From positions 558,001 to 622,000 of the forward strand of contig OZ251239.1 of the NCBI GenBank assembly GCA_965240325.2: a DNA stretch of 64,000 bases. The letters are read 5' to 3'. Source of the DNA: Rebecca billardiae RCC1528. Taxonomy: Eukaryota; Protista; Haptophyta. The translations under genes were made by a program, and so were the position numbers. This document shows positions 44,490 to 64,000 of the stretch, in pieces; position 1 is the first letter of the stretch; each line of letters begins with the position of its first letter. The notes under the pieces are model-generated. The model saw only the letters and a list, made by a program, of their open reading frames with translations. It was not told the DNA's origin and made no database searches.

Positions 44490-46844
44490 TCAGTCGAGCG
44501 CCAACGCCAGCCCGCGCGCGCGCCGGCGCGCGGCGCGCGCGCCGAGCAGCCGACAGCCAAGCGCGCGCGCGCGCGCCGATCCCTCGAGCAGCGCCGCCTC
44601 CGCCACGAGCGCGAGGAGCGCGGGGCCGAGCGCGAGGAGCGCGAGCGCGCCGAGCGGCGAGCGCGCGAGCTGCACGGCGTGCGCGCGCACCAGCATGCGC
44701 GCCAGCCGGTTGCGCCGCGCGAGCCGTTGCAGCCGCCACGGCGAGAGGCGGCGGCGCGTGCGCACCCGGAGCCCGCGAGGGAGCGCGCGCGCCGCGCTCG
44801 CAACGCCGAGCAGCGCGGTGCGCGCGGCGGCGAGGACCGTCGCGCGGAGCGCGCTGCGCTCGCGCGGGCTCGCGTCGCACAGCATCTCGCGCTGCGCGCG
44901 CACCACGCCGCGCAGCGCCGCGCCGCACAGACTTGGCGTGCTCACGGACACGGCGACGCGGCGCAACGCGCCGCCTTCAACCGACGGTTCAAGCACCAGC
45001 GCGCCGGCCTCGGCGGCGGCGCGGCGGAGGCGTGCCTCGGCGCTGCTCGGGCCGGCCGAGGCGGGGTCGGGCTGCTGCGCGGCGGCGCTCGGGCCGGCGG
45101 AGGCGGCGGCCTCGTCGCGCCCGCCCAGCAGCCGCAGCCGCGCCCAGCGCGGCACGCCCTCCTCGTCGACGCACAGCTCGCGCAGCGCGCGCCGCCCCTC
45201 CGCGGTCCGTGGCGTAAGCGCGCGGCGCACCGCGTGCGGCAACGCCTCGTCGACGGCTGAGATCGGGGTGGCGAGCTCGGAGGCGAAGCCGTCGAGGGTG
45301 ACGACGGCGCGGATGATGAAGACCATCCACGAGGGCAGCACGAAGCGGTAGCTCAGCGAGAGGCTCGAGAGCGCCGTCGTCATCTCCGAGAAGGATCGAT
45401 CGGCGCCCGCCTCCTGATCCATGTGTGCGACGAACGCCGCTGCAAACGTTTTCTCGTCGACGCTCGCCCAGCGTCCGGGCGCGAGCGGCCCGGCGGGCTC
45501 GCCGGTGCGCGCGTCGACCCAGAGCGAGGGGCGCGGCGGGAGCAGCCCGAGCGCGCGCAGGTCGCCGATCAGCTCCTCCCACCTCCGGCCCAGCGTGTGC
45601 AGGATCCCCAGCGCCATCGCCTCCTGCTGCGCCACGGTGCACGACGTCACAAGCCCAAAGTCTAAAAGAGCGAGCTGGCCGCGTGGTGTGTACAGCATGT
45701 TGCCGTAGTGCGGGTCGGCGTGGATCACGCCGGTGCGCAGGAGCTGGAGGAAGCACGCGCGCAGCCCGAGCCGGATCATCGCCTCCTGCTCCGCCGCGCC
45801 CAGCTCCGTCAGCTTCCGCCCGTCCACCCAGCCCATTGTGAGCACGCGGCGCGCGCTCAGCGCTCGGAGCGAGCTCGGAACCGTTAGCTGTGGCATCAGC
45901 GGCGTGTGCACGCGCTCGAAGGCGGCGGCCTGCTCGGCCTCGAGGCGGAAGTCGATCTCGCGGAACAGCCCCGCGCCCACCTCCGCCGTCATCTCCTCGA
46001 TGTCCGCCTCCTCGCTCAGCACGCCCAGCGCGCGCAGCCAGCGCAGCAGCAGCCGGACCACCGTGCAGTCGAGCGCAACGTTGGAAGCCACGCCCGGGCG
46101 CTGTACCTTGACTGCGACCGCCTCGCCGTCGGCGGTGACGGCGCGGTACACCTGCGCGAGCGAGGCCGCGGCGATCGGCGCGTCCGATATCGCCGCGAAG
46201 AGCGGCGCCGCCGACTCCGACCCCGACCCCGCCGCCGCGTCCGCGCCCGCGTCCGCCACCGCCGCCGCCGCCGCGCGGCGCAGCTCCCACTCGCGAGGTT
46301 CGAGCGCGGCCGCGGGCACGCGCGCGGCCGTGACGTGCTCGGGCGCGACGCCGAGCTCGCGCGCGATCGTGCGCATCGCAACCCCGTCGTCGAACACGAC
46401 GTTCGCGTCCTGCAGCGACGCCAGCGCGTCGGCCGCCTCGTCGCCGATAATGTCGGGCCGCGTGGCGAGCGTCTGGCTCAGCTTGACAAAGACGACACCG
46501 AGCGAGGACATGGCGTCACGCAGCCGGTCGCCACGGTCCTCGGCGCGCGTGAGCCACGCGAGCGCGACCGATGCGCCCGTCGCGCCCACCTGCGCCAGCC
46601 GCACCGCGACGGTGAGCGGGCGCGCGGCGTAGAAGTCGCCGATCAGAGCCATCTTCGATTCAAACTGCATGTCGCGTGCGACCATGGCCTCCTCGAGCGG
46701 GTTGACGTGGACGGGCGCGGCTGGGACGGACATGGACATGGCCACGGCACGAGGCGCCGTGGAGCAAAACTGGACCCCTCTGCCCGAAGAGCGGGCGCCG
46801 GAGATGGCGCTCGCGGCGAGGACGGCGGCCCATGCAGGCGTCAT
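44490..46844 (-). CDS. ABC1/UbiB atypical kinase (ABC1K), probably plastid-targeted; alternative start 46898
   Basis: FVKLSQTLATRPDI, PIAAASLAQVYRA, VAVKVQRP, REIDFRLEA, HADPHYGN, LLDFGL; N-terminal signal-like MTPAWAAVLAASAISG. Confidence 0.9.
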   Translation of the reverse strand: MTPAWAAVLAASAISGARSSGRGVQFCSTAPRAVAMSMSVPAAPVHVNPLEEAMVARDMQFESKMALIGDFYAARPLTVAVRLAQVGATGASVALAWLTRAEDRGDRLRDAMSSLGVVFVKLSQTLATRPDIIGDEAADALASLQDANVVFDDGVAMRTIARELGVAPEHVTAARVPAAALEPREWELRRAAAAAVADAGADAAAGSGSESAAPLFAAISDAPIAAASLAQVYRAVTADGEAVAVKVQRPGVASNVALDCTVVRLLLRWLRALGVLSEEADIEEMTAEVGAGLFREIDFRLEAEQAAAFERVHTPLMPQLTVPSSLRALSARRVLTMGWVDGRKLTELGAAEQEAMIRLGLRACFLQLLRTGVIHADPHYGNMLYTPRGQLALLDFGLVTSCTVAQQEAMALGILHTLGRRWEELIGDLRALGLLPPRPSLWVDARTGEPAGPLAPGRWASVDEKTFAAAFVAHMDQEAGADRSFSEMTTALSSLSLSYRFVLPSWMVFIIRAVVTLDGFASELATPISAVDEALPHAVRRALTPRTAEGRRALRELCVDEEGVPRWARLRLLGGRDEAAASAGPSAAAQQPDPASAGPSSAEARLRRAAAEAGALVLEPSVEGGALRRVAVSVSTPSLCGAALRGVVRAQREMLCDASPRERSALRATVLAAARTALLGVASAARALPRGLRVRTRRRLSPWRLQRLARRNRLARMLVRAHAVQLARSPLGALALLALGPALLALVAEAALLEGSARARALGCRLLGARAARRRARGLALALD

Positions 46845-46982
46845 TAGCGCGACAAGACCCGATACTTGTATGCGTGGTGACGAAAACGTTGGCGCCATTT
46901 TCTCGCACCACGAATCCTTGGTTCGGCCCGCCCGGGTCGGGCGGCGCGCGCAAGCCGGTGCGCCACGCACAAGCTGGCCGGC

Positions 46983-48491
46983 ATGGCCAACGTGAAGAGC
47001 CCCAGCTGTGATCACGCTGGCTGCACCAAGCAGCCTTCGTTCGGCATGCCGGGCGACGCGCGCGCCAGCCGGTGCGCTACGCACAAGCTGGCCGGCATGG
47101 TCGACGTGATGAACCGCAAGTGTGATCACGCTGGCTGCACCAAGCAGCCTTCGTTCGCCATGCCGGGTGGCGCGCGCGCCAGCCTGTGCGCTACGCACAA
47201 GCTGGCCGGCATGGTCGACTTCAAGCACCCCAAGTGTGATCACACCGGCTGCACCAAGGTGCCTTCATTCGGCATGCCGGGCGACGCGCGCGCCAGCCGG
47301 TGCGCTACGCACAAGCTGGCCGGCATGGTCGACGTGATGAACCGCAAGTGTGATCACGCTGGCTGCACCAAGCAGCCTTCGTTCGCCATGCCGGGTGGCG
47401 CGCGCGCCAGCCTGTGCGCTACGCACAAGCTGGCCGGCATGGTCGACGTGAGGAGCCCCAAGTGTGATCACGCTGGCTGCACCAAGAAGCCTTCATTCGG
47501 CATGCCGGGCGACGCGCGCGCCAGCCGGTGCGCTCCGCACAAGCTGGCCGGCATGGTCGACGTGAGGAGCCCCAAGTGTGATCACGCTGGCTGCACCAAG
47601 CAGCCTTCATTCGGCATGCCGGGCGACGCGCGCGCCAGCCGGTGCGCTCCGCACAAGCTGGCCGGCATGGTCGACGTGAGGAGCCCCAAGTGTGATCACG
47701 CTGGCTGCGCCAAGCAGCCTTCGTTCGGCATGCCGGGTGACGCGCGCGCCAGCCGGTGCGCTACGCATAAGCTGGCCGGCATGGTCGACGTGAGGAGCCC
47801 CAAGTGTGATCACGCGGGCTGCACCACGCGGCCTTCGTACGGCATGCCGGGCGACGCGCGCGCCAGCCGGTGCGCTACGCATAAGCTGGCCGGCATGGTC
47901 GACTTCAAGCACCCCAAGTGTGATCACACCGGCTGCACCAAGGTGCCTTCGTACGGCATGCCGGGCGACGCGCGCGCCAGCCGGTGCGCTACGCACAAGC
48001 TGGCCGGCATGGTTGATAGTCGTCTCGCCGTCCCCAAGCGCAGGCTGGAGCATGGCACGGATGGCACCGGCGACCAGGGCACGCGCGCCGCGAAGCGACG
48101 GCACAAACCCACCAGCTGCGTTGCCGCTGTTTCGGACGCCGCGCCGCAGCTTTCACCACCGCCGCCGCTGGTCCCTGTCAGCATCGTCCGCTGGCGCTCG
48201 CCAGATGGCACGATCCATTCGGTTGACGACGGGGTGGTCAATAATGGTGTCTCAGTCTGGGCCCTGGACGAGCGGTATCAGCGTGGCAACGCAGGTGAGA
48301 ACGCAATCCGGGCTGCCCATGCCGGCCATGGAATCTACGACCAGGGTCTACCAGCACGCATCAACACCACAGCGGTGCCAGCACTACCGCCGTCACCATC
48401 GATGGTGGTGGGAGCAGCACGCCGGCAGCAACCGCAGGACATACCTGTGGTGATGGCCAGGAGGGCCAGGGTCCGGGACGCTGCAGGCTGA
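46983..48491 (+). CDS. EsV-1-7-like Cys/His tandem-repeat protein, copy 1 (9 x 38-aa repeats + 160-aa tail with basic NLS-like motifs)
   Basis: Unit MVDVRSPKCDHAGCTKQPSFGMPGDARASRCATHKLAG (C-x4-C-x16-C-x2-H) matches the EsV-1-7 cysteine repeat pattern. Tail contains PKRR and AAKRRHK. Confidence 0.85.
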   Translation: MANVKSPSCDHAGCTKQPSFGMPGDARASRCATHKLAGMVDVMNRKCDHAGCTKQPSFAMPGGARASLCATHKLAGMVDFKHPKCDHTGCTKVPSFGMPGDARASRCATHKLAGMVDVMNRKCDHAGCTKQPSFAMPGGARASLCATHKLAGMVDVRSPKCDHAGCTKKPSFGMPGDARASRCAPHKLAGMVDVRSPKCDHAGCTKQPSFGMPGDARASRCAPHKLAGMVDVRSPKCDHAGCAKQPSFGMPGDARASRCATHKLAGMVDVRSPKCDHAGCTTRPSYGMPGDARASRCATHKLAGMVDFKHPKCDHTGCTKVPSYGMPGDARASRCATHKLAGMVDSRLAVPKRRLEHGTDGTGDQGTRAAKRRHKPTSCVAAVSDAAPQLSPPPPLVPVSIVRWRSPDGTIHSVDDGVVNNGVSVWALDERYQRGNAGENAIRAAHAGHGIYDQGLPARINTTAVPALPPSPSMVVGAARRQQPQDIPVVMARRARVRDAAG

Positions 48492-48561
48492 TGAAGTCGT
48501 GAAGCGTGGCTGCATATCGTTTTGGCCCTTTCAGAATTCAGGAAATAAAGGGTTTAGTGAT

Positions 48562-50346
48562 GGGAGTTGGCACTACCAAACCGAGCTCAGAATGAGGAGT
48601 GTACCGAGCTCAGCGGATGTACCATGGTACACTTTATTGGTACATTGAATTGATGGTGACACACCGTAGTATTGGCAATACTGCTAGTATTGGCGGTATT
48701 CATGACTACTCATGTCCGAGAGATGTCGTACCAAATGTACCGCCAATGGTGTATATATACCAATTATGTACCGACAATGTGTACCAACGCATCCCGGTGA
48801 CAATGTACCAAAGTAAGTCATTGGGTGTACCATGGTACACTTTGGTATACACTTTGGTACATTTTGGTACATTTTTGAATGTATACCAGCAGTGTCGTCA
48901 ACTGCTCCGCGCTCCAAAAATGTACCAACTCCTCCCAAGAATGTACCAACATGTACCAACGTCGCCTAAAAATGTACCAAATGTACCAATAACTCATATC
49001 CCCAAGATGTACCAAAATGTACCACAGCAGCCAGCGATTCGGAGCTGGTACACTTCATGAGTGTACCAGTACATCAGGGTGCCGGACCGCGATCGCGGCT
49101 GACTCGGCTGCTTCCCAATAATGTACTAGACGAGTCGTGCGGGGGACGAGTGCGCCCATCATCGACATGGCGGGCACGCTCGACATCGACGACGTTACGT
49201 GGGACGGCCACTTTGACCCCGAGCTCAAGCACGACGAGCCCCTGCGGGAGGCCGAGCGGGTGCCGAGCGGGCGCTATCCTAAGTATCTGAGAGCTCGAGC
49301 AATCCCTCCAAGTCCAACAGCGCGACACCAGTGTCGAGGCAGTCATGATGACGGCGGACATCCGCCGACTCAACCCCGTCTTCGCAAGCTTGGGGACGTC
49401 TAAGGAGGGTGGGAAAGCCGATGCCGTGCTCACCCCTCTCTACTCGCGCATGGCCACCCGGCAAGCTGACTACGGCAGCGCGAGGCACGCGGCGGCTTGG
49501 CTGCTGCAGCAGCCAGCCACCAGCATGCCGCACACGACAGGTGGCGTGCCCGCTGCTGCGCCCGGCCTAAGGGCAGATGTGGCGCGGCCGCCGGCGGACG
49601 ACGCGCAGGCCGAGGTCGGCCGCGCCGGCCTGATGCGCCTGCCTGATGCGCCGCATGTGCGTCGCCACGGGCACCGGCCGCAGCGGTCGCCGGCCGGCGG
49701 ATGCCGTCATGCGCGCGCGTGCGCGCTCAGCAGGCCGCGCGCGGTGGGCGAGCGGAACGCGCACGCGTGCGCGATCGCTCGAATGCGCTGCGCCCGCGCC
49801 ACTGCGCGTGACTGTGTGCGCGCACCCACGCACCGGGCCTTTTCACTCGTGCCAGGCGTGCACGTGGCTCAGCACGCAGCCACGACCGCCGCAGCGGCCC
49901 TTGCGTCGGGAGCAGGGGCGGGGAGCGGGCGCACACCGCGCGCTGCACGACGCGTGTGTGCTGCAGCGTACGCAGCCCAGCACATGCTCGACCGCGCGAG
50001 CGTGCTGTCGACCGACCAGGCACGGGCGTGGAATGCGCCGCTTGCGACGCCATCGCTCCGTTGCTGGTATACATTTGGGAGAGTTGGTACATTTGGTACA
50101 TTTTGGTACCTTTTAGGATACGTTGGTACATTCTTTGGACGAGTTGGTACATTTTGGTCGGATTTGGTACACCTGGTACATATCTCGGTGCGAACTGGTA
50201 CATTTCGATACATTTGGTACAGCATTTTGGTACACGTTGGTACACTTGAAAAATGTACCAACCTGTACCAAAGTGTACCAAAATGTACCATGGTACATCG
50301 CCTGAGCTCGGTACACTCCGGTTCTGAGCTCGGTTTGGTCGATCTA
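48562..50346. mobile_element. 1.78-kb non-autonomous DNA transposon (possible hAT deletion derivative), copy A
   Basis: Absent from the equivalent spacer at 63121-63140. AGTGAT duplicated at 48556-61 and 50347-52. ~57-bp subterminal inverted repeat (48575-48631 vs 50284-50339). Arrays of TGTACCA at left and TGGTACA at right. Remnant RQADYGSARHAAAWLL resembles hAT LHAAAYxL. Confidence 0.75.
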
Positions 50347-52609
50347 AGTGATCCCAACGTTGGCGGCTTGGCGCCTTTTCACGCATCGCCACATACGCGC
50401 GTCGCGCTCCTTCTGGCGATCCGGTGTTTACGATAGGCGGATGCAGGGGTTGCCTGGGGCCGCCAGTCGCCACGGGGGGGGGACAGGGCGGCGAGGCAGC
50501 GCCCGCCCGGCAGCACATCGCCCCCCCCGTGGACGCTGACTCAAGCCGCACCCACCCCAGCGCGGCGATCCCACGCCAGGGAGGGCGGGCGGGAGGCGGA
50601 GGAGCGCCGCTGGCTGTCCGTGAGTGTGCCGGCGCCGCCGCGGCCTGCCGCCCGGGGGCCCCGGGCCCGGGCGGGGCCGCTGTGCTCAGGCGTCGGCCGG
50701 GGCAGGGTGCGCCGGGGGGCAGTCGCGGCGGAAGCGGTCGGCTGCACGACGTGGGCTGCCCTGACCGGCCCCGAAGGTGCGCCTGTCACGCCGAGGGTCG
50801 GCCCTCCTGCAGGTACGCTCACTTTCCGCTTGGTACCCGCGCCGCAAAGGCGAGCTGCTTCCGACTCACATCTCGTCACCGTGCGGTCACTCCGGCGATG
50901 CCGCTGCGAGCGCCGAGCCCGCGTCCGGCCAGGTATACGCCCACCTAGCGGGGAGGGGCACGGGCGGCGGCGGAGCAGCGACGCGGCAGTCATAACGCGA
51001 TAACCGCCGCGGACTGCCAAACCCACCACTCCCGTCGCGTCGGCCATCGCCCCATAACCGCGCGCGCGTCGCGCTCCTTCTGGCGATCCGGTGTTTACGA
51101 TAGGCGGATGCAGGGGTTGCCTGGGGCCGCCAGTCGCCACGGGGGGGGGCAGGGCGGCGAGGCAGCGCCCGCCCAAAGAGGCGCAGCGCCAGGCGCCACG
51201 CCGGCGTGGCCGGCGTCGGCCGGCGCGGCCGAGGCCAGGCCCGGCCCCGACCCCCAGAGGCGCAGCGCCCTGCCCACCACCACGCCGCACGCCGCCGGTG
51301 TGAGGCCGCGGAGCGGCGGACTGGGTGCCCCCCCCCCCTCCCCCCCAGCGCTCAGCCCCTGCCAGAGGTCGCCGAGAGCCCGCAGCGACCGGCGGACCAC
51401 AGGACCACTGGCGTAACCCGCCCGTCGTCGCGCGCCGGCACAGGCCAGGCGAAGCGCTGCAGGTGACCCGCAGGCCACGCCGTCCACTTGCCCGACGAAA
51501 CCGCCCAGCAGCACGCGCGCACCGCCGCCGCCGCCGCCGGCCGGCGAGAGCGCATGCGCCCGAGCCGTCGCGGAACACACCCGAGCCGACATGAGGCGCA
51601 GGTATCGACGTCGGCTTGCCGACAACGTCGTCAACCACGCGCGATGAGCGGTGCACGCGCGGGCGGATCGGAGCGCGCGCATGATAAACGGCGCATGATA
51701 CTCGGCGCGCGCGCATGACGGCGCGCGCGCATGATGATCGGCGCTGGTCGGTGCGCGCGCATGATGATCGTCACGCGATGATCGGCGCGCGCGCATGACC
51801 ATGCGCGCGCGTGACGAATTCGCCGCAACGGCTCGCGCGAGAGGCACAAGGCGATTGACGATGAACGCGACCACGTTCGAGCGCTCGAGCGAAGCAGGAG
51901 GTGATGAGTGAGGAAGATGGCACAGGAATGGGAGAGGAACGCGTGGCGCGTGGCGGGAAGGGCCAGGCACGCTCGGCGTGAGGAAAGGAACGCGCGTAGA
52001 AACGGAACGGAACGGAAAGCAGCGGTTCGAGCGATAGACAGGAGGTGATTGACGACGATGAGCGCGTGCGCGCTCGAGCGACGCAGAAGGTGACGAGCGA
52101 GGAAGACCAAGGCCAGGTGAAAGCGCCGCAGGTGGCCAGTGGGCCACGTCGCTTTTCGCGCCCGAAAACGCCCAGCAGCGCGCGCGCCCCGCTGCAGTGG
52201 CAGCCGACCGGCGAGAGCTGCATCCGCCAGGGCCGCCACGCGGCGCAGGTATCAACGCCGGCCCGCCGACAACGTCGTCCCCGACACCCCGGCCACAGAC
52301 ACCACGTACACCCATGTAAGCGCGCCGAAAGGTGCGCGCGAGGATGGCGCACTCGGCACCCGAATGATGATGATGGTTGCGCGGAGCACGAATGATGATC
52401 GGCGCGCGCGGGTATCAACGCCAGCCCGCCGACGACGTCGTCCCCCACGCCCCGGCCACAGACACCACGTACGCCCATGTAAGCGCGCCGAAAGGTGTGT
52501 GCGATGATGGCACGCTCGGCACCCGGATGATGATGCGATGGTTACGCTGAGCACGAAGTGATGATCGGCGCGCGCACATGATGATGATCGGCGCGCGCGC
52601 ATGAGAAGA

Positions 52610-53272
52610 CAGGTGCGAGTGACGCGCGGAGAAGATGCGCGCGGAGACGATAGGCGCGGAGGACATAGGCGCAAGTAACGCGCGGAGGAGATAGGCGCAA
52701 GTAACGCGCGGAGAAGATAGGCGCAAGTAACGCGCGGAGAAGATATAGTAGGCGCAAGTAACGCGCGGAGACAGGCGCAAGTAACGCGCGGAGAAGATAG
52801 GCGCAAGTAAACGCGCGGAGAAGATATAGTAGGCGCAAGTAACGCGCGGAGACAGGCGCAAGTAACGCGCGGAGAAGATAGGCGCAAGTAACGCGCGGAG
52901 AAGATATAGTAGGCGCAAGTAACGCGCGGAGACAGGCGCAAGTAACGCGCGGAGAAGATAGGCGCAAGTAAACGCGCGGAGAAGATATAGTAGGCGCAAG
53001 TAACGCGCGGAGACAGGCGCAAGTAACGCGCGGAGAAGTAGATAGTATAGGCGCAAGTAACGCGCGGAGGAGGTATAGGCGCAAGTGACGCGCGGAGACA
53101 GGCGCAAGTAACGCGTGGGGAAGTAGATATAGTAGGCGCAAGTAACGCGCGGAGAAGTAGATAGGCGCAAGTGACGCGCGGAGACAGGCGCAAGTAACGC
53201 GCGGAGAAGTAGATAGTAGGCGCAAGTAACGCGCGGAGATGAGATAGGCGCAAGTGACGCGCGGAGAAGATA
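52610..53272. repeat. Minisatellite, ~22 copies of core AGGCGCAAGTAACGCGCGGAG with short variable linkers
   Basis: Direct count of GGCGCAAGT cores. Linkers AC, AAGAT and AAGATATAGT recur cyclically. Confidence 0.9.
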
Positions 53273-53319
53273 GGGTGCGCACACGATGATCGGCGCATGA
53301 TGATCGGCGCGCGCGCGAG

Positions 53320-53399
53320 GGATAGACAGATAGACAGATAGACAGATAGACAGATAGACAGATAGACAGATAGATAGACAGATAGATAGACAGATAGAC
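53320..53399. repeat. (GATA/GACA)n microsatellite
   Basis: gatagacagatagacagata... visible directly. Confidence 0.92.
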
Positions 53400-54979
53400 G
53401 CGCGAGTGAGCGACGGCGAGCTGTAGAGAAGGGTGAGTCGTGCGGCGGCGAGTGGCGGCGGCGTGCTTGCAGCGCGGCAGCGGCGTGCGGCGAGCGCGAA
53501 CACGCGGAGCGCGCGCGGCTCCGCTGTTGCGCCCCGAGGGGCCCGCGCCGAAGAAGCGCGCTCGCTCGAGCGGGGGGCAGATCGAAGGTGATGAAGCGCG
53601 CGGTTCCGCTCAAGCGAAGTAGAAGGTGATGAGCGACGAGTGTGCCCGACGGACGACAGCGCAACGACACCTCACGCGCCGCCCCGCCGGCCGCCCAACA
53701 GATGGCCGAGAACGGGACGCCGAAGTAGCATGTGTGCGCTCACTGCCCGCGCCGCCGACATGCGCTCCAGCTCGGACGAAGGGCAGAAGGTGTTGTTGAG
53801 CGCGCCCCCGCGAGCGCGCAGCAGCTGGTGAGGAGCGTGTTGTTGAGTACGCCCCCGCGAGCGCGCAGCAGCTGGTGAGGAGCGTGGAGCGTGCCCGACA
53901 CACGCCCGCTGGCGCCGCCCCGCCGTGCGCCCAGCCGCCGGACGCTGCCGATGGACGCAGAAGCAGCATGGATGCGCACGAGTCTCGTCCAGCGCCAAAA
54001 TGCGCTCGCGCGCGAGCGAGGCAGACAGCGCCGAGCGCGCCCACGCTCGAGCGAAGCAGGTGGAGATGAGCGAGGAGCGCGCACGACGGACGGCAGCGCA
54101 CCGGCACCTCACTTACCACCCCGATGTGCGTCCCCGATGTGCGCCCGGCCACCGGACGCCTCAGAAGGACACCCAGCACAAGCGTGGTCGCGCACGAGCG
54201 GATGAGAGAAGCAGAAGGCGCTGAGCGTTCCCCTCGAGTAAAGCAGTGGGCCATGAGGAGGAGGGAGCACGACGGACGGCAGTGCCCAGCACCTCGCGCT
54301 CCGCCTCGCAGTGCGCACGACCGTCGGATGCCGCCGCAGAAGGACGCCGAAGCAGCATCGTGAGAGTTCGAGCGTGATGCACGCGCACCACGCCAGGGGG
54401 GGACAACGAGGAACGGGGAGCGAAGGAGGCGGAGGAGCGCCGCTGGCTGTCCGTGAGTGTGCCGGCGCCGCCGCGGCCTGCCGCCCGGGGGCCCCGGGCC
54501 CGGGCGGGGCCGCTGTGCTCAGGCGTCGGCCGGGGCAGGGTGCGCCGGGGGGCAGTCGCGGCGGAAGCGGTCGGCTGCACGACGTGGGCTGCCCTGACCG
54601 GCCCCGAAGGTGCGCCTGTCACGCCGAGGGTCGGCCCTCCTGCAGGTACGCTCACTTTCCGCTTGGTACCCGCGCCGCAAAGGCGAGCTGCTTCCGACTC
54701 ACATCTCGTCACCGTGCGGTCACTCCGGCGATGCCGCTGCGAGCGCCGAGCCCGCGTCCGGCCAGGTATACGCCCACCTAGCGGGGAGGGGCACGGGCGG
54801 CGGCGGAGCAGCGACGCGGCAGTCATAACGCGATAACCGCCGCGGACTGCCAAACCCACCACTCCCGTCGCGTCGGCCATCGCCCCGAATATCCTTGGTT
54901 CGGCAGCCCCTGCCCCCTGCAGGCCGGGCGACGCGCGCGCCAGGCCGCCAGCCGGTGCGCCACGCACAAGCTTGCCGGC

Positions 54980-56710
54980 ATGGTCGACGTGAGGAGCCCA
55001 GAGTGTGATCACGCCGGCTGCACCACGTGGCCTTCGTACGGCATGCCGGGCGACGCGCGCGCCAGCCGGTGCGCCACGCACAAGCTGGCCGGCATGGTCG
55101 ACGTGAAGAACCTCGAGTGTGATCACGCCGGCTGCACCACGCGGCCTTCGTTCGGCATGCCGGGCGACGCGCGCGCCAGCCGGTGCGCCACGCACAAGCT
55201 GGCCGGCATGGTCGACGTGGTGAACCGCAAGTGTGATCACGTCAGTTGCACCAAGCAGCCTTCGTTCGGCATGCCGGACGGCGCGCGCGCCAGCCGGTGC
55301 GCTACGCACAAGCTGGCCGGCATGGTTGACGTGAAGCGCCGCAAGTGTGATCACACCGGCTGCACCAAGCAGCCTTCGTTCGGCATGCCGGGCGACGCGC
55401 GCGCCAGCCGGTGTGCGACGCACAAGCTGGCCGGCATGGTCGACGTGAGGAGCCCCAAGTGTGATCACGCGGGCTGCACCAAGCAGCCTTCGTACGGCAT
55501 GCCGGGCGACGCGCGCGCCAGCCGGTGCGCTACGCATAAGCTGGCCGGCATGGTCGACGTGAAGAGCCGCAATTGTGATCACACCGGCTGCACCAAGAAG
55601 CCTTCGTTCGGCATGCCGGGCGACGCGCGCGCCAGCCGGTGCGCTACGCACACGCTGGCCGGCATGGTCGACTTCAAGCACCCCAAGTGTGATCACACCA
55701 GCTGCACCAAGGAGCCTTCGTACGGCATGCCGGGCGACGCGCGCGGCAGCCGGTGCGCCACGCACAAGCTGGCCGGCATGATCAACTTGAAGCGCCCCAT
55801 GTGTGATCACGTCAGTTGCACCAAGGAGCCTTCGTTCGGCATGCCGGGCGACGCGCGCGCCAGCCGGTGCGCTACGCACAAGCTGGCCGGCATGGTCGAC
55901 GTGAAGAGCCGCAATTGTGATCACACCGGCTGCACCAAGAAGCCTTCGTTCGGCATGCCGGGCGACGCGCGCGCCAGCCGGTGCGCTACGCACACGCTGG
56001 CCGGCATGATCAACGTGAAGCACCCCAGCTGTGATCACGCTGGCTGCACCAAGCAGCCTTCGTTCGGCATGCCGGGCGATGCGCGCGCCAGCCGGTGCGC
56101 TACGCACAAGCTGGCCGGCATGGTCGACGTGAGGAGCCCCAAGTGTGATCACGCCGGCTGCACCACGCGGCCTTCGTACGGCATGCCGGGCGACGCGCGC
56201 GCCAGCCGGTGCGCTACGCACAAGCTGGCCGGCATGGTTGATAGTCGTCTCGCCGTCCCCAAGCGCAGGCTGGAGCATGGCACGGATGGCACCGGCGACC
56301 AGGGCACGCGCGCCGCGAAGCGACGGCACAAACCCACCAGCTGCGTTGCCGCTGTTTCGGACGCCGCGCCGCAGCTTTCACCACCGCCGCCGCTGGTCCC
56401 TGTCAGCATCGTCCGCTGGCGCTCTCCAGATGGCACGATCCATTCGGTTGACGACGGGGTGGTCAATGATGGTGTCTGGGCCCCGGACGAGCGGTATCAG
56501 CGTGGCAACGCAGGTGAGAACGCAATCCGGGCTGCCCATGCCGGCCATGGAATCTACGTCCAGGGTCTACCAGCACGCATCAACACCACAGCGGTGCCAG
56601 CACTACCGCCGTCACCATCGATGGTGGTGGGAGCAGCACGCCGGCAGCAACCGCAGGACATACCTGTGGTGATGGCCAGGAGGGCCAGGGTCCGGGACGC
56701 TGCAGGCTGA
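54980..56710 (+). CDS. EsV-1-7-like tandem-repeat protein, copy 2 (11 repeats + 158-aa tail)
   Basis: Intact ORF with the same 38-aa unit and tail as copy 1 but different repeat variants and order. Confidence 0.85.
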   Translation: MVDVRSPECDHAGCTTWPSYGMPGDARASRCATHKLAGMVDVKNLECDHAGCTTRPSFGMPGDARASRCATHKLAGMVDVVNRKCDHVSCTKQPSFGMPDGARASRCATHKLAGMVDVKRRKCDHTGCTKQPSFGMPGDARASRCATHKLAGMVDVRSPKCDHAGCTKQPSYGMPGDARASRCATHKLAGMVDVKSRNCDHTGCTKKPSFGMPGDARASRCATHTLAGMVDFKHPKCDHTSCTKEPSYGMPGDARGSRCATHKLAGMINLKRPMCDHVSCTKEPSFGMPGDARASRCATHKLAGMVDVKSRNCDHTGCTKKPSFGMPGDARASRCATHTLAGMINVKHPSCDHAGCTKQPSFGMPGDARASRCATHKLAGMVDVRSPKCDHAGCTTRPSYGMPGDARASRCATHKLAGMVDSRLAVPKRRLEHGTDGTGDQGTRAAKRRHKPTSCVAAVSDAAPQLSPPPPLVPVSIVRWRSPDGTIHSVDDGVVNDGVWAPDERYQRGNAGENAIRAAHAGHGIYVQGLPARINTTAVPALPPSPSMVVGAARRQQPQDIPVVMARRARVRDAAG

Positions 56711-56780
56711 TGAAGTCGTGAAGCGTGGCTGCATATCGTTTTGGCCCTTTCAGAATTCAGGAAATAAAGGGTTTAGTGAT

Positions 56781-58562
56781 GGGAGTTGGCACTACCAAAC
56801 CGAGCTCAGAATGAGGAGTGTACCGAGCTCAGCGGATGTACCATGGTACACTTTATTGGTACATTGAATTGGTGACACACCGTAGTATTGGCAATACTGC
56901 TAGTATTGGCGGTATTCATGACTACTCATGTCCGAGAGATGTCGTACCAAATGTACCGCCAATGGTGTATATATACCAATTATGTACCGACAATGTGTAC
57001 CAACGCATCCCGGTGACAATGTACCAAAGTAAGTCATTGGGTGTACCATGGTACACTTTGGTATACACTTTGGTACATTTTGGTACATTTTTGAATGTAT
57101 ACCAGCAGTGTCGTCAACTGCTCCGCGCTCCAAAAATGTACCAACTCCTCCCAAGAATGTACCAACATGTACCAACGTCGCCTAAAAATGTACCAAATGT
57201 ACCAATAACTCATATCCCCAAGATGTACCAAAATGTACCACAGCAGCCAGCGATTCGGAGCTGGTACACTTCATGAGTGTACCAGTACATCAGGGTGCCG
57301 GACCGCGATCGCGGCTGACTCGGCTGCTTCCCAATAATGTACTAGACGAGTCGTGCGGGGGACGAGTGCGCCCATCATCGACATGGCGGGCACGCTCGAC
57401 ATCGACGACGTTACGTGGGACGGCCACTTTGACCCCGAGCTCAAGCACGACGAGCCCCTGCGGGAGGCCGAGCGGGTGCCGAGCGGGCGCTATCCTAAGT
57501 ATCTGAGAGCTCGAGCAATCCCTCCAAGTCCAACAGCGCGACACCAGTGTCGAGGCAGTCATGATGACGGCGGACATCCGCCGACTCAACCCCGTCTTCG
57601 CAAGCTTGGGGACGTCTAAGGAGGGTGGGAAAGCCGATGCCGTGCTCACCCCTCTCTACTCGCGCATGGCCACCCGGCAAGCTGACTACGGCAGCGCGAG
57701 GCACGCGGCGGCTTGGCTGCTGCAGCAGCCAGCCACCAGCATGCCGCACACGACAGGTGGCGTGCCCGCTGCTGCGCCCGGCCTAAGGGCAGATGTGGCG
57801 CGGCCGCCGGCGGACGACGCGCAGGCCGAGGTCGGCCGCGCCGGCCTGATGCGCCTGCCTGATGCGCCGCATGTGCGTCGCCACGGGCACCGGCCGCAGC
57901 GGTCGCCGGCCGGCGGATGCCGTCATGCGCGCGCGTGCGCGCTCAGCAGGCCGCGCGCGGTGGGCGAGCGGAACGCGCACGCGTGCGCGATCGCTCGAAT
58001 GCGCTGCGCCCGCGCCACTGCGCGTGACTGTGTGCGCGCACCCACGCACCGGGCCTTTTCACTCGTGCCAGGCGTGCACGTGGCTCAGCACGCAGCCACG
58101 ACCGCCGCAGCGGCCCTTGCGTCGGGAGCAGGGGCGGGGAGCGGGCGCACACCGCGCGCTGCACGACGCGTGTGTGCTGCAGCGTACGCAGCCCAGCACA
58201 TGCTCGACCGCGCGAGCGTGCTGTCGACCGACCAGGCACGGGCGTGGAATGCGCCGCTTGCGACGCCATCGCTCCGTTGCTGGTATACATTTGGGAGAGT
58301 TGGTACATTTGGTACATTTTGGTACCTTTTAGGATACGTTGGTACATTCTTTGGACGAGTTGGTACATTTTGGTCGGATTTGGTACACCTGGTACATATC
58401 TCGGTGCGAACTGGTACATTTCGATACATTTGGTACAGCATTTTGGTACACGTTGGTACACTTGAAAAATGTACCAACCTGTACCAAAGTGTACCAAAAT
58501 GTACCATGGTACATCGCCTGAGCTCGGTACACTCCGGTTCTGAGCTCGGTTTGGTCGATCTA
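56781..58562. mobile_element. 1.78-kb non-autonomous DNA transposon, copy B
   Basis: Nearly identical to 48562-50346 (3 bp shorter), same insertion point, AGTGAT at 56775-80 and 58563-68. Confidence 0.75.
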
Positions 58563-58699
58563 AGTGATCCCAACGTTGGCGGCTTGGCGCCTTTTCACGC
58601 ATCGCCACGAATACTTGGTTCGGCAGCCCCTGCCCCCTGCAGGCCGGGCGACGCGCGCGCCAGGCCGCCAGCCGGTGCGCCACGCACAAGCTTGCCGGC

Positions 58700-61600
58700 A
58701 TGGTCGACGTGAGGAGCCCAGAGTGTGATCACGCCGGCTGCACCACGTGGCCTTCGTACGGCATGCCGGGCGACGCGCGCGCCAGCCGGTGCGCCACGCA
58801 CAAGCTGGCCGGCATGGTCGACGTGAAGAACCTCGAGTGTGATCACGCCGGCTGCACCACGCGGCCTTCGTTCGGCATGCCGGGCGACGCGCGCGCCAGC
58901 CGGTGCGCCACGCACAAGCTGGCCGGCATGGTCGACGTGGTGAACCGCAAGTGTGATCACGTCAGTTGCACCAAGCAGCCTTCGTTCGGCATGCCGGACG
59001 GCGCGCGCGCCAGCCGGTGCGCTACGCACAAGCTGGCCGGCATGGTTGACGTGAAGCGCCGCAAGTGTGATCACACCGGCTGCACCAAGCAGCCTTCGTT
59101 CGGCATGCCGGGCGACGCGCGCGCCAGCCGGTGTGCGACGCACAAGCTGGCCGGCATGGTCGACGTGAGGAGCCCCAAGTGTGATCACGCGGGCTGCACC
59201 AAGCAGCCTTCGTACGGCATGCCGGGCGACGCGCGCGCCAGCCGGTGCGCTACGCATAAGCTGGCCGGCATGGTCGACGTGAAGAGCCGCAATTGTGATC
59301 ACACCGGCTGCACCAAGAAGCCTTCGTTCGGCATGCCGGGCGACGCGCGCGCCAGCCGGTGCGCTACGCACACGCTGGCCGGCATGGTCGACTTCAAGCA
59401 CCCCAAGTGTGATCACACCAGCTGCACCAAGGAGCCTTCGTACGGCATGCCGGGCGACGCGCGCGGCAGCCGGTGCGCCACGCACAAGCTGGCCGGCATG
59501 ATCAACTTGAAGCGCCCCATGTGTGATCACGTCAGTTGCACCAAGGAGCCTTCGTTCGGCATGCCGGGCGACGCGCGCGCCAGCCGGTGCGCTACGCACA
59601 AGCTGGCCGGCATGGTCGACGTGAAGAGCCGCAATTGTGATCACACCGGCTGCACCAAGAAGCCTTCGTTCGGCATGCCGGGCGACGCGCGCGCCAGCCG
59701 GTGCGCTACGCACACGCTGGCCGGCATGATCAACGTGAAGCACCCCAGCTGTGATCACGCTGGCTGCACCAAGCAGCCTTCGTTCGGCATGCCGGGCGAT
59801 GCGCGCGCCAGCCGGTGCGCTACGCACAAGCTGGCCGGCATGGTCGACGTGAGGAGCCCCAAGTGTGATCACGCCGGCTGCACCACGCGGCCTTCGTACG
59901 GCATGCCGGGCGACGCGCGCGCCAGCCGGTGCGCTACGCACAAGCTGGCCGGCATGGTTGATAGTCGTCTCGCCGTCCCCAAGCGCAGGCTGGAGCATGG
60001 CACGGATGGCACCGGCGACCAGGGCACGCGCGCCGCGAAGCGACGGCACAAACCCACCAGCTGCGTTGCCGCTGTTTCGGACGCCGCGCCGCAGCTTTCA
60101 CCACCGCCGCCGCTGGTCCCTGTCAGCATCGTCCGCTGGCGCTCTCCAGATGGCACGATCCATTCGGTTGACGACGGGGTGGTCAATGAGGGTGTCTGGG
60201 CCCCGGACGAGCGGTATCAGCGTGGCAACGCAGGTGAGAACGCAATCCGGGCTGCCCATGCCGGCCATGGAATCTACGGGTGGAATTCCCATTTTCTGGC
60301 GCACTTCCGCACTGGGGAGGCGGAAAAGCGCCATTTAATACGAAAATAAGCTAATAAAAAGGCATTTATAATCATCAAAGAAATAAGCGCGCATGCAGTG
60401 CGAATAAGAAATTGTTTCGACGGCGGTGTAGTATGCGAATCACCATGGATCTGCGTACGCGGCGTCCCGAGCACCCTCGGGGCTCAGCTGCGGCTCGGCC
60501 TGCGCACGCTCAGCAAGCTCGCGTGCGGCAGCCTTTCCCTTGCCCCGCCTCGAGCAAGACTCACTATGAGGATCGACGTATGACTATGAGTGAGCGTGTG
60601 CCGCCGAAAGCTGCTGTCCGACAGCCACCCGCGGCTGCAGCCGCTGGCCGCGGTGCCTGGCCTCGGCGCGGGCCCCGCAGGCCTCCTCCTCCTGCGCGCC
60701 TCCTCCAGGCGTTTGGGCCGCCGCCGCCTTGGCCGCCTCGTCCTCGTCGATCAGCTGAACGGCGGGAGTGATGTCTGTGCTCAGCTGACTGCGACTTGAC
60801 GAGCGAGGCGACGAGCGACAGCAGCCCGATGACCAAGCCGACGAGCTCGTCGTACGAGCCGTCACGCGTGCGCTCGTGCTGTGTCTGAGCTGGCTCGCGC
60901 TCGTACGCCGACCAGGCTTTGCTCGGACTGAACGCGTCTGCTCGGGTGTCTTTGCGTGTGCGCTTGGGCGGCCGCGGGCCGTCATCTGGTCCGACCGCGC
61001 GCAGCTCGAGCTCGGAAGCGTTGAGCTGCTCCACGGTCGACTCGCTTTCTGCCTCAGGCTCGACCACGGCAGCAGGCCCCGCAGCAGCCGCCTGATAGCA
61101 TCGGCAGGGGCCCCTGCGCCACCCGCCGCCGTCCGCACATCGGCCAGCTTGGCGCACACGCTCTGGACCACGGCCTCGCCGCGCTTGACGCGGATGTGGT
61201 GCCAGGTCGTCGTGCCAATCGCTTGGCGATTGGCAACGGGTTCGGGCACCTCGATGACGACAACGCCTGTCGCGTAGGCTGTGTAGCGATGACCGTCCAC
61301 GACTCCGTCGCGGGTGGACGGCGCCATGCACCGGCACGCCATCGCGGCCGTGGACGCAAGTGAATTCATGAATTGTTTTTGAATTCACTAATTCGCCCAG
61401 GCCGCTACGTTGAACTCGAGCACGGACAATGTTACAACCGCGATCTTTTGACTGTGTGAATGGGGCGCCGCCCCATGCTCAAATCCGAAGAGAACGAAGT
61501 TGTAACATTGCCTGGTCCCTAGATACTATGCTGTCCGGGTCCAGTCCGGGGCGGATCTGAGCAGCCGGATTTTCCGCCCGGACAGGCCAGAAAATGGGAT

Positions 61601-61766
61601 TTTCACCCCTACGACCAGGGTCTACCAGCACGCATCAACACCACAGCGGTGCCAGCACTACCGCCGTCACCATCGATGGTGGTGGGAGCAGCACGCCGGC
61701 AGCAACCGCAGGACATACCTGTGGTGATGGCCAGGAGGGCCTGAGGGTCGGGGACGCTGCAGGCTG
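58700..61766 (+). pseudogene. EsV-1-7-like tandem-repeat gene, copy 3 (11 repeats), tail interrupted by a TIR element (ORF now ends at 60349)
   Basis: Repeat array has the same protein sequence as copy 2 (offset 3720 bp). Tail breaks at 60277 and resumes at 61609. Confidence 0.8.
60278..61608. mobile_element. 1.33-kb TIR element, 23-bp TIRs (2 mismatches), 4-bp target duplication CTAC
   Basis: GGGTGGAATTCCCATTTTCTGGC (60278-60300) pairs with GCCAGAAAATGGGATTTTCACCC (61586-61608). CTAC at 60274-77 and 61609-12. Empty site GGAATCTACGACC is seen in copy 1. Confidence 0.9.
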
Positions 61767-61988
61767 ATGAAGTCGTGAAGTAGCGTGGCTGCATGTCGTT
61801 TTATTGATGGCGCGCTTTCAGAATTCAGGAAAAGAGTTTGGGAGTGGTCCCAACGTTGGCGGCTGCTTGGCGCCATTATTTTTCTCGCATCGCCACGACG
61901 AATATCCTTGGTTCGGCAGCCCCTGCCCCAGGCCGGGCGATGCGCGCGCCAGGCCGCCAGCCGGTGCGCCACGCACAAGCTTGCCGGC

Positions 61989-63011
61989 ATGGTCGACGTG
62001 AGGAGCCCAGTCCCAGAGTGTGATCACGCCGGCTGCACCACGCGGCCTTCGTTCGGCATGCCGGGTGACGCGCGCGCCAGCCGGTGCGCCACGCACAAGC
62101 TGGCCGGCATGGTCGACGTGAAGAACCTCGAGTGTGATCACGCCGGCTGCACCACGCGGCCTTCGTTCGGCATGCCGGGCGACGCGCGCGCCAGCCGGTG
62201 CGCCACGCACAAGCTGGCCGGCATGGTCGACGTGGTGAACCGCAAGTGTGATCACGTCAGTTGCACCAAGGAGCCTTCGTTTGGCATGCCGGGCGACGCG
62301 CGCGCCAGCCGGTGCGCTACGCACAAGCTGGCCGGCATGGTCGACGTGAGGAGCCCCAAGTGTGATCACGCTGGCTGCACCAAGCAGCCTTCATTCGGCA
62401 TGCCGGGCGACGCGCGCGCCAGCCGGTGCGCTACGCACAAGCTGGCCGGCATGGTCGACGTGAGGAGCCCCAACTGTGATCACGCGGGCTGCACCAAGAA
62501 GCCTTCATTCGGCATGCCGGGCGACGCGCGCGCCAGCCGGTGCGCTACGCACAAGCTGGCCGGCATGGTTGATAGTCGTCTCGCCGTCCCCAAGCGCAGG
62601 CTGGAGCATGGCACGGATGGCACCGGCGACCAGGGCACGCGCGCCGCGAAGCGACGGCACAAACCCACCAGCTGCGTTGCCGCTGTTTCGGACGCCGCGC
62701 CGCAGCTTTCACCACCGCCGCCGCTGGTCCCTGTCAGCATCGTCCGCTGGCGCTCGCCAGATGGCACGATCCATTCGGTTGACGACGGGGTGGTCAATAA
62801 TGGTGTCTCAGTCTGGGCCCTGGACGAGCGGTATCAGCGTGGCAACGCAGGTGAGAACGCAATCCGGGCTGCCCATGCCGGCCATGGAATCACTACGACC
62901 AGGGTCTACCAGCACGCATCAACACCACAGCGGTGCCAGCACTACCGCCGTCACCATCGATGGTGGTGGGAGCAGCACGCCGGCAGCAACAGCCGGACAT
63001 CCCTGTGGTGA
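61989..63011 (+). CDS. EsV-1-7-like tandem-repeat protein, copy 4 (5 repeats; +2 frameshift in tail)
   Basis: 5 units, the first with a 2-aa insertion. GGAATCACTACGACC at 62886-62900 shifts the last part of the tail into another frame. Confidence 0.75.
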   Translation: MVDVRSPVPECDHAGCTTRPSFGMPGDARASRCATHKLAGMVDVKNLECDHAGCTTRPSFGMPGDARASRCATHKLAGMVDVVNRKCDHVSCTKEPSFGMPGDARASRCATHKLAGMVDVRSPKCDHAGCTKQPSFGMPGDARASRCATHKLAGMVDVRSPNCDHAGCTKKPSFGMPGDARASRCATHKLAGMVDSRLAVPKRRLEHGTDGTGDQGTRAAKRRHKPTSCVAAVSDAAPQLSPPPPLVPVSIVRWRSPDGTIHSVDDGVVNNGVSVWALDERYQRGNAGENAIRAAHAGHGITTTRVYQHASTPQRCQHYRRHHRWWWEQHAGSNSRTSLW

Positions 63012-63272
63012 TGGCCAGGAGGGCCAGGGTCCGGGACGCTGCAGGCTGATGAAGTCGCGTGAAGCGTGGCTGCATACCCCCATACTGTATCGTTTTGGCC
63101 CTTTCAGAATTCAGGAAAATAAGGGTTTAGTGATCCCAACGTTGGCGGCTTGGCGCCATTTTGACGAATTTTCTCGCATCGCCACGAATATCCTTGATGG
63201 TTCGGCCTGCCCCAGGCCGGGCGACGCGCGCGCCAGGCCGCCAGCCGGTGCGCTACGCACAAGCTTGCCGGC

Positions 63273-64000
63273 ATGGTCGACGTGAGGAGCCCCACGTGTG
63301 ATCACGCCGGTTGCATCAAGATGCCTTCGTTCGGCATGCCAGGCGACGCGCGCGCCAGCCGGTGCGCCACGCACAAGCTGGCCGGCATGGTCGACTTGAA
63401 GCACCCCATGTGTGATCACGTCAGTTGCACCAAGGAGCCTTCGTTCGGCATGCCGGGCGACGCGCGCGCCAGCCGGTGCGCTACGCACAAGCTGGCCGGC
63501 ATGGTCGACGTGAAGAGACCCAGCTGTGATCACGCCGGCTGCACCAAGCGGCCTTCGTTCGGCATGCCGGGCGACGCGCGCGCCAGCCGGTGCGCTACGC
63601 ACAAGCTGGCCGGCATGGTCGACGTGAGGAGCCCCAAGTGTGATCACGCTGGCTGCACCAAGCAGTCTTCATTCGGCATGCCGGGCGACGCGCGCGCCAG
63701 CCGGTGCGCTACGCACAAGCTGGCCGGCATGGTCGACGTGAGGAGCCCCAAGTGTGATCACGCTGGCTGCACCAAGCAGCCTTCATTCGGCATGCCGGGC
63801 GACGCGCGCGCCAGCCGGTGCGCTACGCACAAGCTGGCCGGCATGGTCGACGTGAGGAACCGCAAGTGTGATCACACCGGCTGCACCAAGAAGCCTTCAT
63901 TCGGCATGCCGGGCGACGCGCGCGCCAGCCGGTGCGCTACGCACAAGCTGGCCGGCATGGTCGACGTGAGGAGCCCCAAGTGTGATCACGCTGGCTGCAC
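63273..64000 (+). CDS. EsV-1-7-like tandem-repeat protein, copy 5 (6 full repeats plus part of a 7th; runs off the window)
   Basis: ATG 63273 followed by uninterrupted 114-bp units to the window end. Confidence 0.8.
   Translation, partial: MVDVRSPTCDHAGCIKMPSFGMPGDARASRCATHKLAGMVDLKHPMCDHVSCTKEPSFGMPGDARASRCATHKLAGMVDVKRPSCDHAGCTKRPSFGMPGDARASRCATHKLAGMVDVRSPKCDHAGCTKQSSFGMPGDARASRCATHKLAGMVDVRSPKCDHAGCTKQPSFGMPGDARASRCATHKLAGMVDVRNRKCDHTGCTKKPSFGMPGDARASRCATHKLAGMVDVRSPKCDHAGC

Follow-up and report, generated by a model that had tools for sequence, protein, structure and literature searches.

Tandem EsV-1-7 repeat genes in the haptophyte Rebecca billardiae: cassette evolution of Cys3His arrays and their possible role in modular recognition of DNA

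The window considered here, 64,000 nucleotides (64 kb) of the genome of the haptophyte Rebecca billardiae RCC1528 (GenBank assembly GCA_965240325.2, contig OZ251239.1, positions 558,001 to 622,000 of the forward strand; coordinates below count from the first letter of the window), ends in a cluster of five tandem paralogous genes, designated A1 to A5 and each taken as a single open reading frame (ORF), whose products are arrays of a Cys3His repeat. By sequence, these genes of the haptophyte nuclear genome are members of the known EsV-1-7 family, and not relatives of the transcription activator-like (TAL) effectors or of PRDM9. The arrays evolve as cassettes, units being gained by duplication, lost, or passed from one gene to another, with homogeneity maintained in the 3' half of the unit. 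The nearest database relatives, mostly from giant viruses, appear to place such an array ahead of an endonuclease of the Vsr/EDxHD type, and the mechanism we consider most likely, with a probability of about 0.55, is that the array recognises DNA in a modular manner, in the nucleus and, in these genes, with no nuclease attached. The genes and the repeat arrays underlying them are as follows.

A1, 46983-48491, plus strand: 9-unit array (46983-48008), then a 160-residue basic tail; ORF of 502 amino acids; Pfam PF19114 at E 5e-131, in 9 stretches
A2, 54980-56710, plus strand: 11-unit array (54980-56233), then a tail (56234-56710); ORF of 576 amino acids; PF19114 at E 8e-157; isoelectric point (pI) of the array 9.3
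A3, 58700-60349, plus strand: 11-unit array, identical in DNA to the A2 array; tail truncated, homology to A2 ending at 60278
A4, 61989-63011, plus strand: 5-unit array (61989-62564), then a tail that changes frame; PF19114 at E 5e-79; conserved ATG at 61989 behind a shared upstream element
A5, 63273-64000, plus strand: at least 6 units; gene cut by the end of the window
Tandem Repeats Finder arrays of a 114-bp unit: 46944-48013; 54946-56238; 58666-59958; 61955-62569; 63239-64000

Architecture and cassette-like evolution of the arrays

As to family membership, an annotation made earlier from the letters alone (the first-pass annotation) had noted a resemblance of the repeat to the EsV-1-7 motif, and the check by hidden Markov model bears this out: all four complete proteins match Pfam EsV_1_7_cys (PF19114) with E-values of 5e-79 to 4e-157 and 260-510 bits, far above the gathering score of 25 bits, in 6-11 stretches per protein. 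No other Pfam domain is found in these four proteins, a PDB sequence search with the array returns no match, and the ligand columns, C-x4-C-x16-C-x2-H, are also invariant in an alignment with 55 database segments. The same annotation had likened the system to TAL effectors and PRDM9, and here only the mode of working is comparable: PF19114 is the sole family found, and neither a TAL repeat nor C2H2 fingers with a PR/SET domain are detected in the proteins of the window by Pfam or by the PDB sequence search, leaving the proposal without homology. The EsV-1-7 family includes IMMEDIATE UPRIGHT (IMM) of Ectocarpus and ORF7 of the virus EsV-1 (Macaisne et al., 2017, as cited in 10.1101/2024.02.19.579948 and PMC12993054), and the literature searched describes tandem expansions in brown algae, the developmental mutant of IMM, and a proposed viral origin. 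In brown algae the EsV-1-7 genes make up one of the largest families, a developmental regulator among them. No biochemical function is given for their products in the literature searched, which mentions neither position-specific hypervariability nor nuclease fusion in the family.

The unit is 38 residues (114 bp) long, in the register of the first-pass annotation (C9, C14, C31, H34). When the whole window is scanned in all six frames with the regular expression C-x4-C-x16-C-x2-H, 42 units are found, all on the plus strand and all between 46983 and 64000, with none elsewhere in the window; all 42 keep the four ligand residues, so that 168 of 168 ligand codons are intact. Tandem Repeats Finder recovers the five arrays with 90-93% matches. 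The scan gives the same counts as originally read, five head-to-tail genes with 9, 11, 11, 5 and at least 6 units (A5 holding six and a partial seventh), the strings of dipeptides at positions 16-17 match those first reported exactly, and residue 17 indeed takes seven states (Q, K, R, E, V, W, M). Unit 1 of A4 carries a 2-residue insertion (VRSPVPE), and the array proteins are basic, with a pI of 9.0-9.5. A2 and A3, listed as two copies, are both present, but their array DNA is identical, with a single base difference over ~1.66 kb (A2 side ~54895-56558), and they therefore count as one observation, not two. A3 could in principle be a mis-assembled duplicate of A2, given this one-base distance and the difficulty of assembling long tandem repeats, and exact look-ups of the A1 and A2 products return no record, including from the short-read assemblies of the same organism. 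However, the upstream junction of A3 is intact and separate from that of A2, its homology downstream breaks off at another point (60278), and the other four arrays differ in composition, so we regard such an artefact as very improbable.

As to the mode of evolution, the 2384 bp following the A1 array and those following the A2 array are 99.45% identical, while the arrays themselves hold 9 and 11 units, respectively, in a different order, and identical units occur at different places both between and within arrays (A2.2=A4.2, A4.4=A5.5, A2.6=A2.9, A1.2=A1.4). Together these observations demonstrate shuffling of cassettes and homogenisation of the scaffold, as the first-pass annotation had supposed in speaking of reshuffling by recombination. 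One further example of homogenisation is the 54-nucleotide 3' half of the unit, which is identical in 13 of 31 units although their 5' halves are of different types; the earlier statement that residues 21-38 are almost invariant even at the DNA level is to be understood accordingly, the proportion of synonymous differences (pS) being 0.067. The patch at residues 5-6 and residue 17 assort independently (p 0.25-0.30), and residues within a patch are linked. Adenine mutagenesis of the type practised by diversity-generating retroelements can be excluded, since variability is tied to no consensus base (minor-allele fractions of 0.072 for A, 0.052 for C, 0.061 for G and 0.029 for T); no reverse transcriptase was found among the window neighbours and spacer ORFs examined.

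The variation is not evenly spread over the unit. We compared the 25 distinct unit sequences pairwise and along a minimum spanning tree that ignores recombination. In the pairwise comparison, the ratio of nonsynonymous to synonymous proportions (pN/pS) reaches 1.35 in the variable set of the first-pass annotation, as against 0.27 in the scaffold, with pN of 0.31-0.45 and pS of 0-0.06 at codons 5, 6 and 17; entropy and pN peak at codons 4-8, 12, 16-17 and 20, in agreement with the original description of a homogenised scaffold with variation concentrated at few codons. On the tree, the ratio of nonsynonymous to synonymous changes (N:S) is 51:2 at codons 4-8, 16 and 17, as against 21:18 for codons not counted among any of the variable positions (Fisher p 1e-6); codons 5, 6 and 17 taken alone give 31:0. 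The 51:2 corresponds to an omega (ratio of nonsynonymous to synonymous rates) of ~6 (p 9e-4), a figure biased by recombination and by a GC content of 0.87 at third codon positions (GC3). Diversifying selection next to the first zinc knuckle, C9-x4-C14, could produce such a pattern.

The same data bear on a different explanation, by which a family of repeat genes, viral in origin or selfish, would have spread through segmental duplication and would now be a decaying coding minisatellite whose variable positions are unconstrained. The truncated tail of A3, the frameshifted tail of A4 and the 4.5-kb insertion that interrupts the upstream element of A2 all fit such decay, as do the chance occurrence of long ORFs at 70% GC and the virtual identity of A2 and A3, which makes this pair uninformative on constraint. 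Decay does not, however, account for the intact state of every ligand codon, nor for the scaffold N:S of 21:18, which, against roughly 64:20 sites, implies purifying selection. Likewise, the nonsynonymous rate at codons 4-8, 16 and 17 is ~3.6 times the unit-wide synonymous rate, above the neutral prediction, and the residue vocabulary is the same in distant relatives. We therefore consider decay an unlikely explanation.

Nuclease-bearing relatives and the array model

Relatives were taken as the best 120 database hits, with 27-68% identity, all possessing PF19114; the named entries among them are from green algae, brown algae, a dinoflagellate and an uncultured virus. At least 68 of these 120 carry a conserved C-terminal motif behind the array. 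An alignment of this C-terminal domain from 60 sequences, ~190-230 residues in length, reveals seven invariant residues (D98, E99, H102, R113, R130, N132, P133) and six nearly invariant ones (R81, P82, D83, E96, Q101, D134). The domain has no Pfam match, and a PDB profile search returns only a weak match to Hjc (E 1.4), so that its fold assignment rests on structure comparison. The AlphaFold (AF2) model of the domain, with a predicted local distance difference score (pLDDT) of 89.7 and a predicted template modelling score (pTM) of 0.83, retrieves almost only PD-(D/E)xK nucleases in Foldseek searches of the PDB and of Swiss-Prot models, at weak E-values, and in a second structure alignment it matches the catalytic domain of I-Bth0305I (Z 8.1, 95 of 97 residues), NGO0050 (Z 7.7) and Vsr (Z 7.0). 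The first of these is prototypic for the EDxHD family, whose C-terminal nuclease, of the Vsr fold, is directed by a DNA-binding region at the N-terminus (PMC3239194). Residues D83, E96/D98, H102 and D134 of the domain would parallel D51, H64, H69 and D97 of Vsr (numbering of PMC3239194) in their spacing, no superposition being implied. The model and the alignment thus suggest that the nearest relatives, mostly of giant-virus origin, set an EsV-1-7 array ahead of a Vsr/EDxHD-type endonuclease.

Such fusions appear to be numerous. A profile search with the C-terminal domain retrieves 7886 cluster representatives, 5589 of them at E<=1e-10, and among the best 150 nearly all show 3-12 or more EsV-like units ahead of the domain, with few lacking an array; the Atlas label on these clusters is Nucleocytoviricota. 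An Atlas look-up suggests, as a lead only, that the domain is elsewhere joined to WRKY19-type, C2H2 and HA modules. Among the database proteins, P0082, from Effrenium voratum, and P0206 contain an all-cysteine variant of the unit (C-x-C...C-x2-C). The region behind the array of P0082 is different, and its RPD and EFLGNYYHG motifs resemble Vsr on visual inspection; judged so, this dinoflagellate would present array-nuclease fusion of another, second type.

Variable positions were also compared between the window and 26-29 database arrays with units at least 60% identical, of which 22 of 29 possess the nuclease motif. Variability is highest at positions 17, 19, 6, 5 and 3 in the database arrays and at 17, 8, 6, 5 and 12 in the window, an overlap of three among the top five (hypergeometric p ~0.015). 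The residues employed are:

Position 5: database arrays K>V>R>I; window R>K>M=V
Position 6: database arrays S>N>H>D; window S>N>H>R
Position 16: database arrays K>T; window K>T
Position 17: database arrays Q>R>I>H; window Q>K=R>E>V

A further example is presented by three nuclease-bearing proteins that are 92-95% identical overall and differ mainly at residue 17, which is not the same in 3-4 of their 5 units.

The array itself was modelled as four units (AF2, 62 aligned segments; pLDDT 82, pTM 0.51, no metal in the model). The model places small beta bridges at residues 20-21, at 30 and, in the following unit, at 2-3, with C-x2-H forming a short helical turn, and the predicted unit is thus a knuckle-hairpin-helix, with neighbouring units in contact. 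The Cys3His modules are probably zinc-binding and treble-clef-like. The two variable patches, 4-8 and 16-17, flank C9 and C14, which should bind one metal, and are therefore probably adjacent in space. A fold search with the model finds no similar solved structure (Foldseek E>2; the best match by VIA being a RING domain, at Z 2.8).

This last match, to a protein-binding module, leads to a further alternative, that the arrays do have a function, but with protein or RNA in place of DNA as their ligand, serving as scaffolds or adaptors as many treble-clef and knuckle zinc modules do. That IMM, the sole genetically studied member, has no known biochemical activity in the literature searched, and that the genes of the window carry no nuclease, would agree with such a role. 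The fusion of a homing-endonuclease-type domain to the arrays of most close relatives speaks for DNA instead, as do the basic character of the arrays and the nature of the variable residues, mainly S/N/H/D, Q/R/K and K/T, side chains that would be typical of base contacts. We thus view binding of protein or RNA as improbable next to the reading of DNA.

Tails, spacers and genomic surroundings

Each complete array is followed by the same tail, whose first 109 residues are near-invariant in four copies, including KRR-x16-KRRHK, a motif resembling a bipartite nuclear localisation signal (NLS), as in the KRR..KRRHK of A2. The tail was originally described as basic, NLS-like and devoid of an enzyme domain, and this description stands: it is basic, has no Pfam domain and has no homologue in a collection of 5.8 billion proteins. 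A Vsr-fold catalytic domain was searched for in the tails by Pfam, homologue search and hhalign and not found, and the notion of the tail as a degenerate nuclease is rejected, hhalign giving a probability of 0.1% against the profile of the relatives' nuclease domain. Within the A2 tail is a consensus-like splice donor, AG|GTGAGA, at 56508-56516, and an AATAAA lies at 56766-56771, 55 nt beyond the A2 stop codon. Outside the coding regions, three features recur or interrupt the cluster.

Conserved upstream element, 58566-58699, plus strand: intact copy before A3, ~100-150 bp, ending in a degenerate partial unit, as defined from aligned upstream sequences
Spacer after A1, 48492-50392, no strand assigned: duplicated after A2 at 56711-58608
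4.5-kb insertion, 50393-54886, no strand assigned: outside the gene family, flanked by the 9-bp near-repeat CATCGCCAC/CATCGCCCC

Copies of the upstream element precede every ATG, the others ending at 46982, 54979, 61988 and 63272, with blast matches among copies of 83-97% identity, and the first in-frame ATG past the element is the M of unit 1. The spacers after A1 and A2 contain runs of the 10-mer TTGGTACATT and its reverse complement AAAATGTACC at 50084-50290 and 58300-58506, and also at 48833-48989 and 57049-57205; these are clustered GGTACA/TGTACC motifs in both orientations, which could be binding sites or a decayed element. No domains of transposable elements or viruses are found in the spacer ORFs, and there are no matches to Rfam families. 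The 4.5-kb insertion, whose empty site is seen at the A2-A3 junction, contains 300-bp direct repeats (50583-50882 and 54416-54715, 99% identity), an 87-nt exact repeat at 50396 and 51063, and a 23-26/81-nt minisatellite at 52603-53274; no protein domain was found within it.

The 47 kb upstream of the cluster are occupied by ordinary host genes (ABC1 kinase, GT61, a hybrid histidine kinase, RCC1, XRN and SepSecS, the nearest matches of the latter, at 56-58% identity, being proteins of Emiliania and Prymnesium, as expected for a deep-branching haptophyte host) and by no viral hallmark neighbours, and the cluster is therefore not inside a recognisable viral insert, a placement that we had entertained and rejected. 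A 917-amino-acid ORF with the ABC1 kinase domain (44490-47243, minus strand) extends antisense into units 1-2 of A1. Between A3 and A4, a minus-strand ORF at 60564-61385 scores 23.4 bits against a gathering score of 23.3 for Pfam SelK_SelG, and may, to judge from this match, be a selenoprotein K gene located where the homology of the A3 tail ends; SepSecS, the selenocysteine synthase, lies 20 kb upstream.

Logan contigs from the same organism match the window at 100% and are collinear with the genome across three genes, and therefore provide no transcript evidence. One Logan protein, P0069 (L001:763-1716; Logan ERR14847148), of 317 amino acids, contains four non-homogenised EsV-1-7 units, a KRQRR motif and a Pro/Met-rich tail, its best local match being to A2 at 68% identity. 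As the ERR14847148 run also yields contigs 100% identical to the window, P0069 is probably a divergent paralogue of the same architecture in the same organism.

Modular reading of DNA and known systems

Our preferred interpretation is that of arrays as modular readers of DNA, because the nearest relatives fuse them to a Vsr/EDxHD-type endonuclease and because positions 17, 6 and 5 are again highly variable there. Each gene would produce a basic rod, 5-11 Cys3His modules long, to which a bipartite NLS-like tail is attached, with specificity set by residues 4-8 and 16-17 and by the order of the units; having no nuclease, the proteins of the window would bind DNA without cutting it, acting in the nucleus as regulators or as proteins that occupy sites. 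The nucleic-acid target that the first-pass annotation had proposed thus receives support that is indirect, from fusion and shared variable positions, and its further suggestion of a role in surveillance of viruses or transposons receives none.

A number of observations weigh against this interpretation. The nuclease is absent from the genes of the window, and the argument from fusion therefore comes down to array homology alone. Three of the five copies (A2, A3, A4) look damaged: in A2 the upstream element is interrupted by the 4.5-kb insertion, ~95 nt ahead of the ATG, the tail of A3 is truncated, its alignment diverging after ...AHAGHGIY, and that of A4 is frameshifted after ...AHAGHGI. The antisense strand of every array is open, for up to 722 amino acids; such long antisense frames follow from the 70% GC, and ORF length is therefore no evidence of coding here. 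As to selection, the variable codon set was picked after the data were seen, and the high GC3 lowers the synonymous rate and thus inflates N:S. Nonsynonymous changes are in excess at codons 4-8, 16 and 17, as predicted, but a set defined independently from the database arrays (3, 5, 6, 17, 19) gives no significant excess (omega ~1.5, p 0.27), because residue 19 is a fixed serine in the window. The correlation of whole variability profiles between the window and the database arrays is nil (rho 0.05), because the 3' half is frozen in the window, and the agreement is therefore limited to the top positions. Finally, the literature searched contains no binding, zinc or localisation data on any EsV-1-7 protein.

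Overall, the fusion to nucleases in thousands of relatives and the use of the same variable residues in independent arrays make modular recognition of DNA a testable hypothesis. If true, it would explain the expansions of the EsV-1-7 family, would bring a large class of homing endonucleases into the biology of giant viruses, and could offer a new scaffold for designed DNA binders. A broader proposal, which we put forward as speculative, is that EsV-1-7 arrays stand beside C2H2 fingers and TAL repeats as another natural class of modular repeats that read DNA and can be reprogrammed, with two to three specificity residues per module (5/6, 16/17 and, in viruses, 19), which giant viruses would use to aim Vsr-type homing endonucleases, and of which the alga would keep large, nuclease-free, fast-shuffling families that read nuclear DNA, perhaps at the same kinds of sites.

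In comparison with known systems, the closest is the EsV-1-7 family itself, with which the genes of the window share the Cys3His repeat, repeat proteins without another Pfam domain, tandem clusters as in brown algae and a link to giant viruses, while differing in their haptophyte host and in units homogenised to near DNA identity, with variation limited to a few codons. The EDxHD/Vsr-like homing endonucleases (I-Bth0305I, PDB 3R3P) resemble the database relatives in combining an N-terminal targeting region with a C-terminal Vsr-fold nuclease. However, the five genes of the window lack the nuclease, and the targeting region of I-Bth0305I is made of NUMOD and helix-turn-helix motifs, not of zinc repeats. 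The C2H2 arrays of PRDM9 and of KRAB proteins are likewise tandem zinc modules (zinc being predicted in our case) that a minisatellite-like repeat encodes, with a homogenised scaffold, amino-acid change at a few positions, and turnover in module number and order. The fold and ligand pattern are unrelated, though (C-x4-C-x16-C-x2-H over 38 residues versus C2H2 over 28), the genes of the window encode neither PR/SET nor KRAB, and the binding of DNA by their products is a prediction. Another parallel is presented by the repeats of TAL effectors, also near-identical, with a hypervariable di-residue, an NLS-bearing C-terminal region, and nuclease fusions, natural or engineered, that retarget cleavage; these, however, are metal-free helical hairpins of 34 residues, with no homology to the arrays of the window, which vary in two separate patches (5-8 and 16-17).

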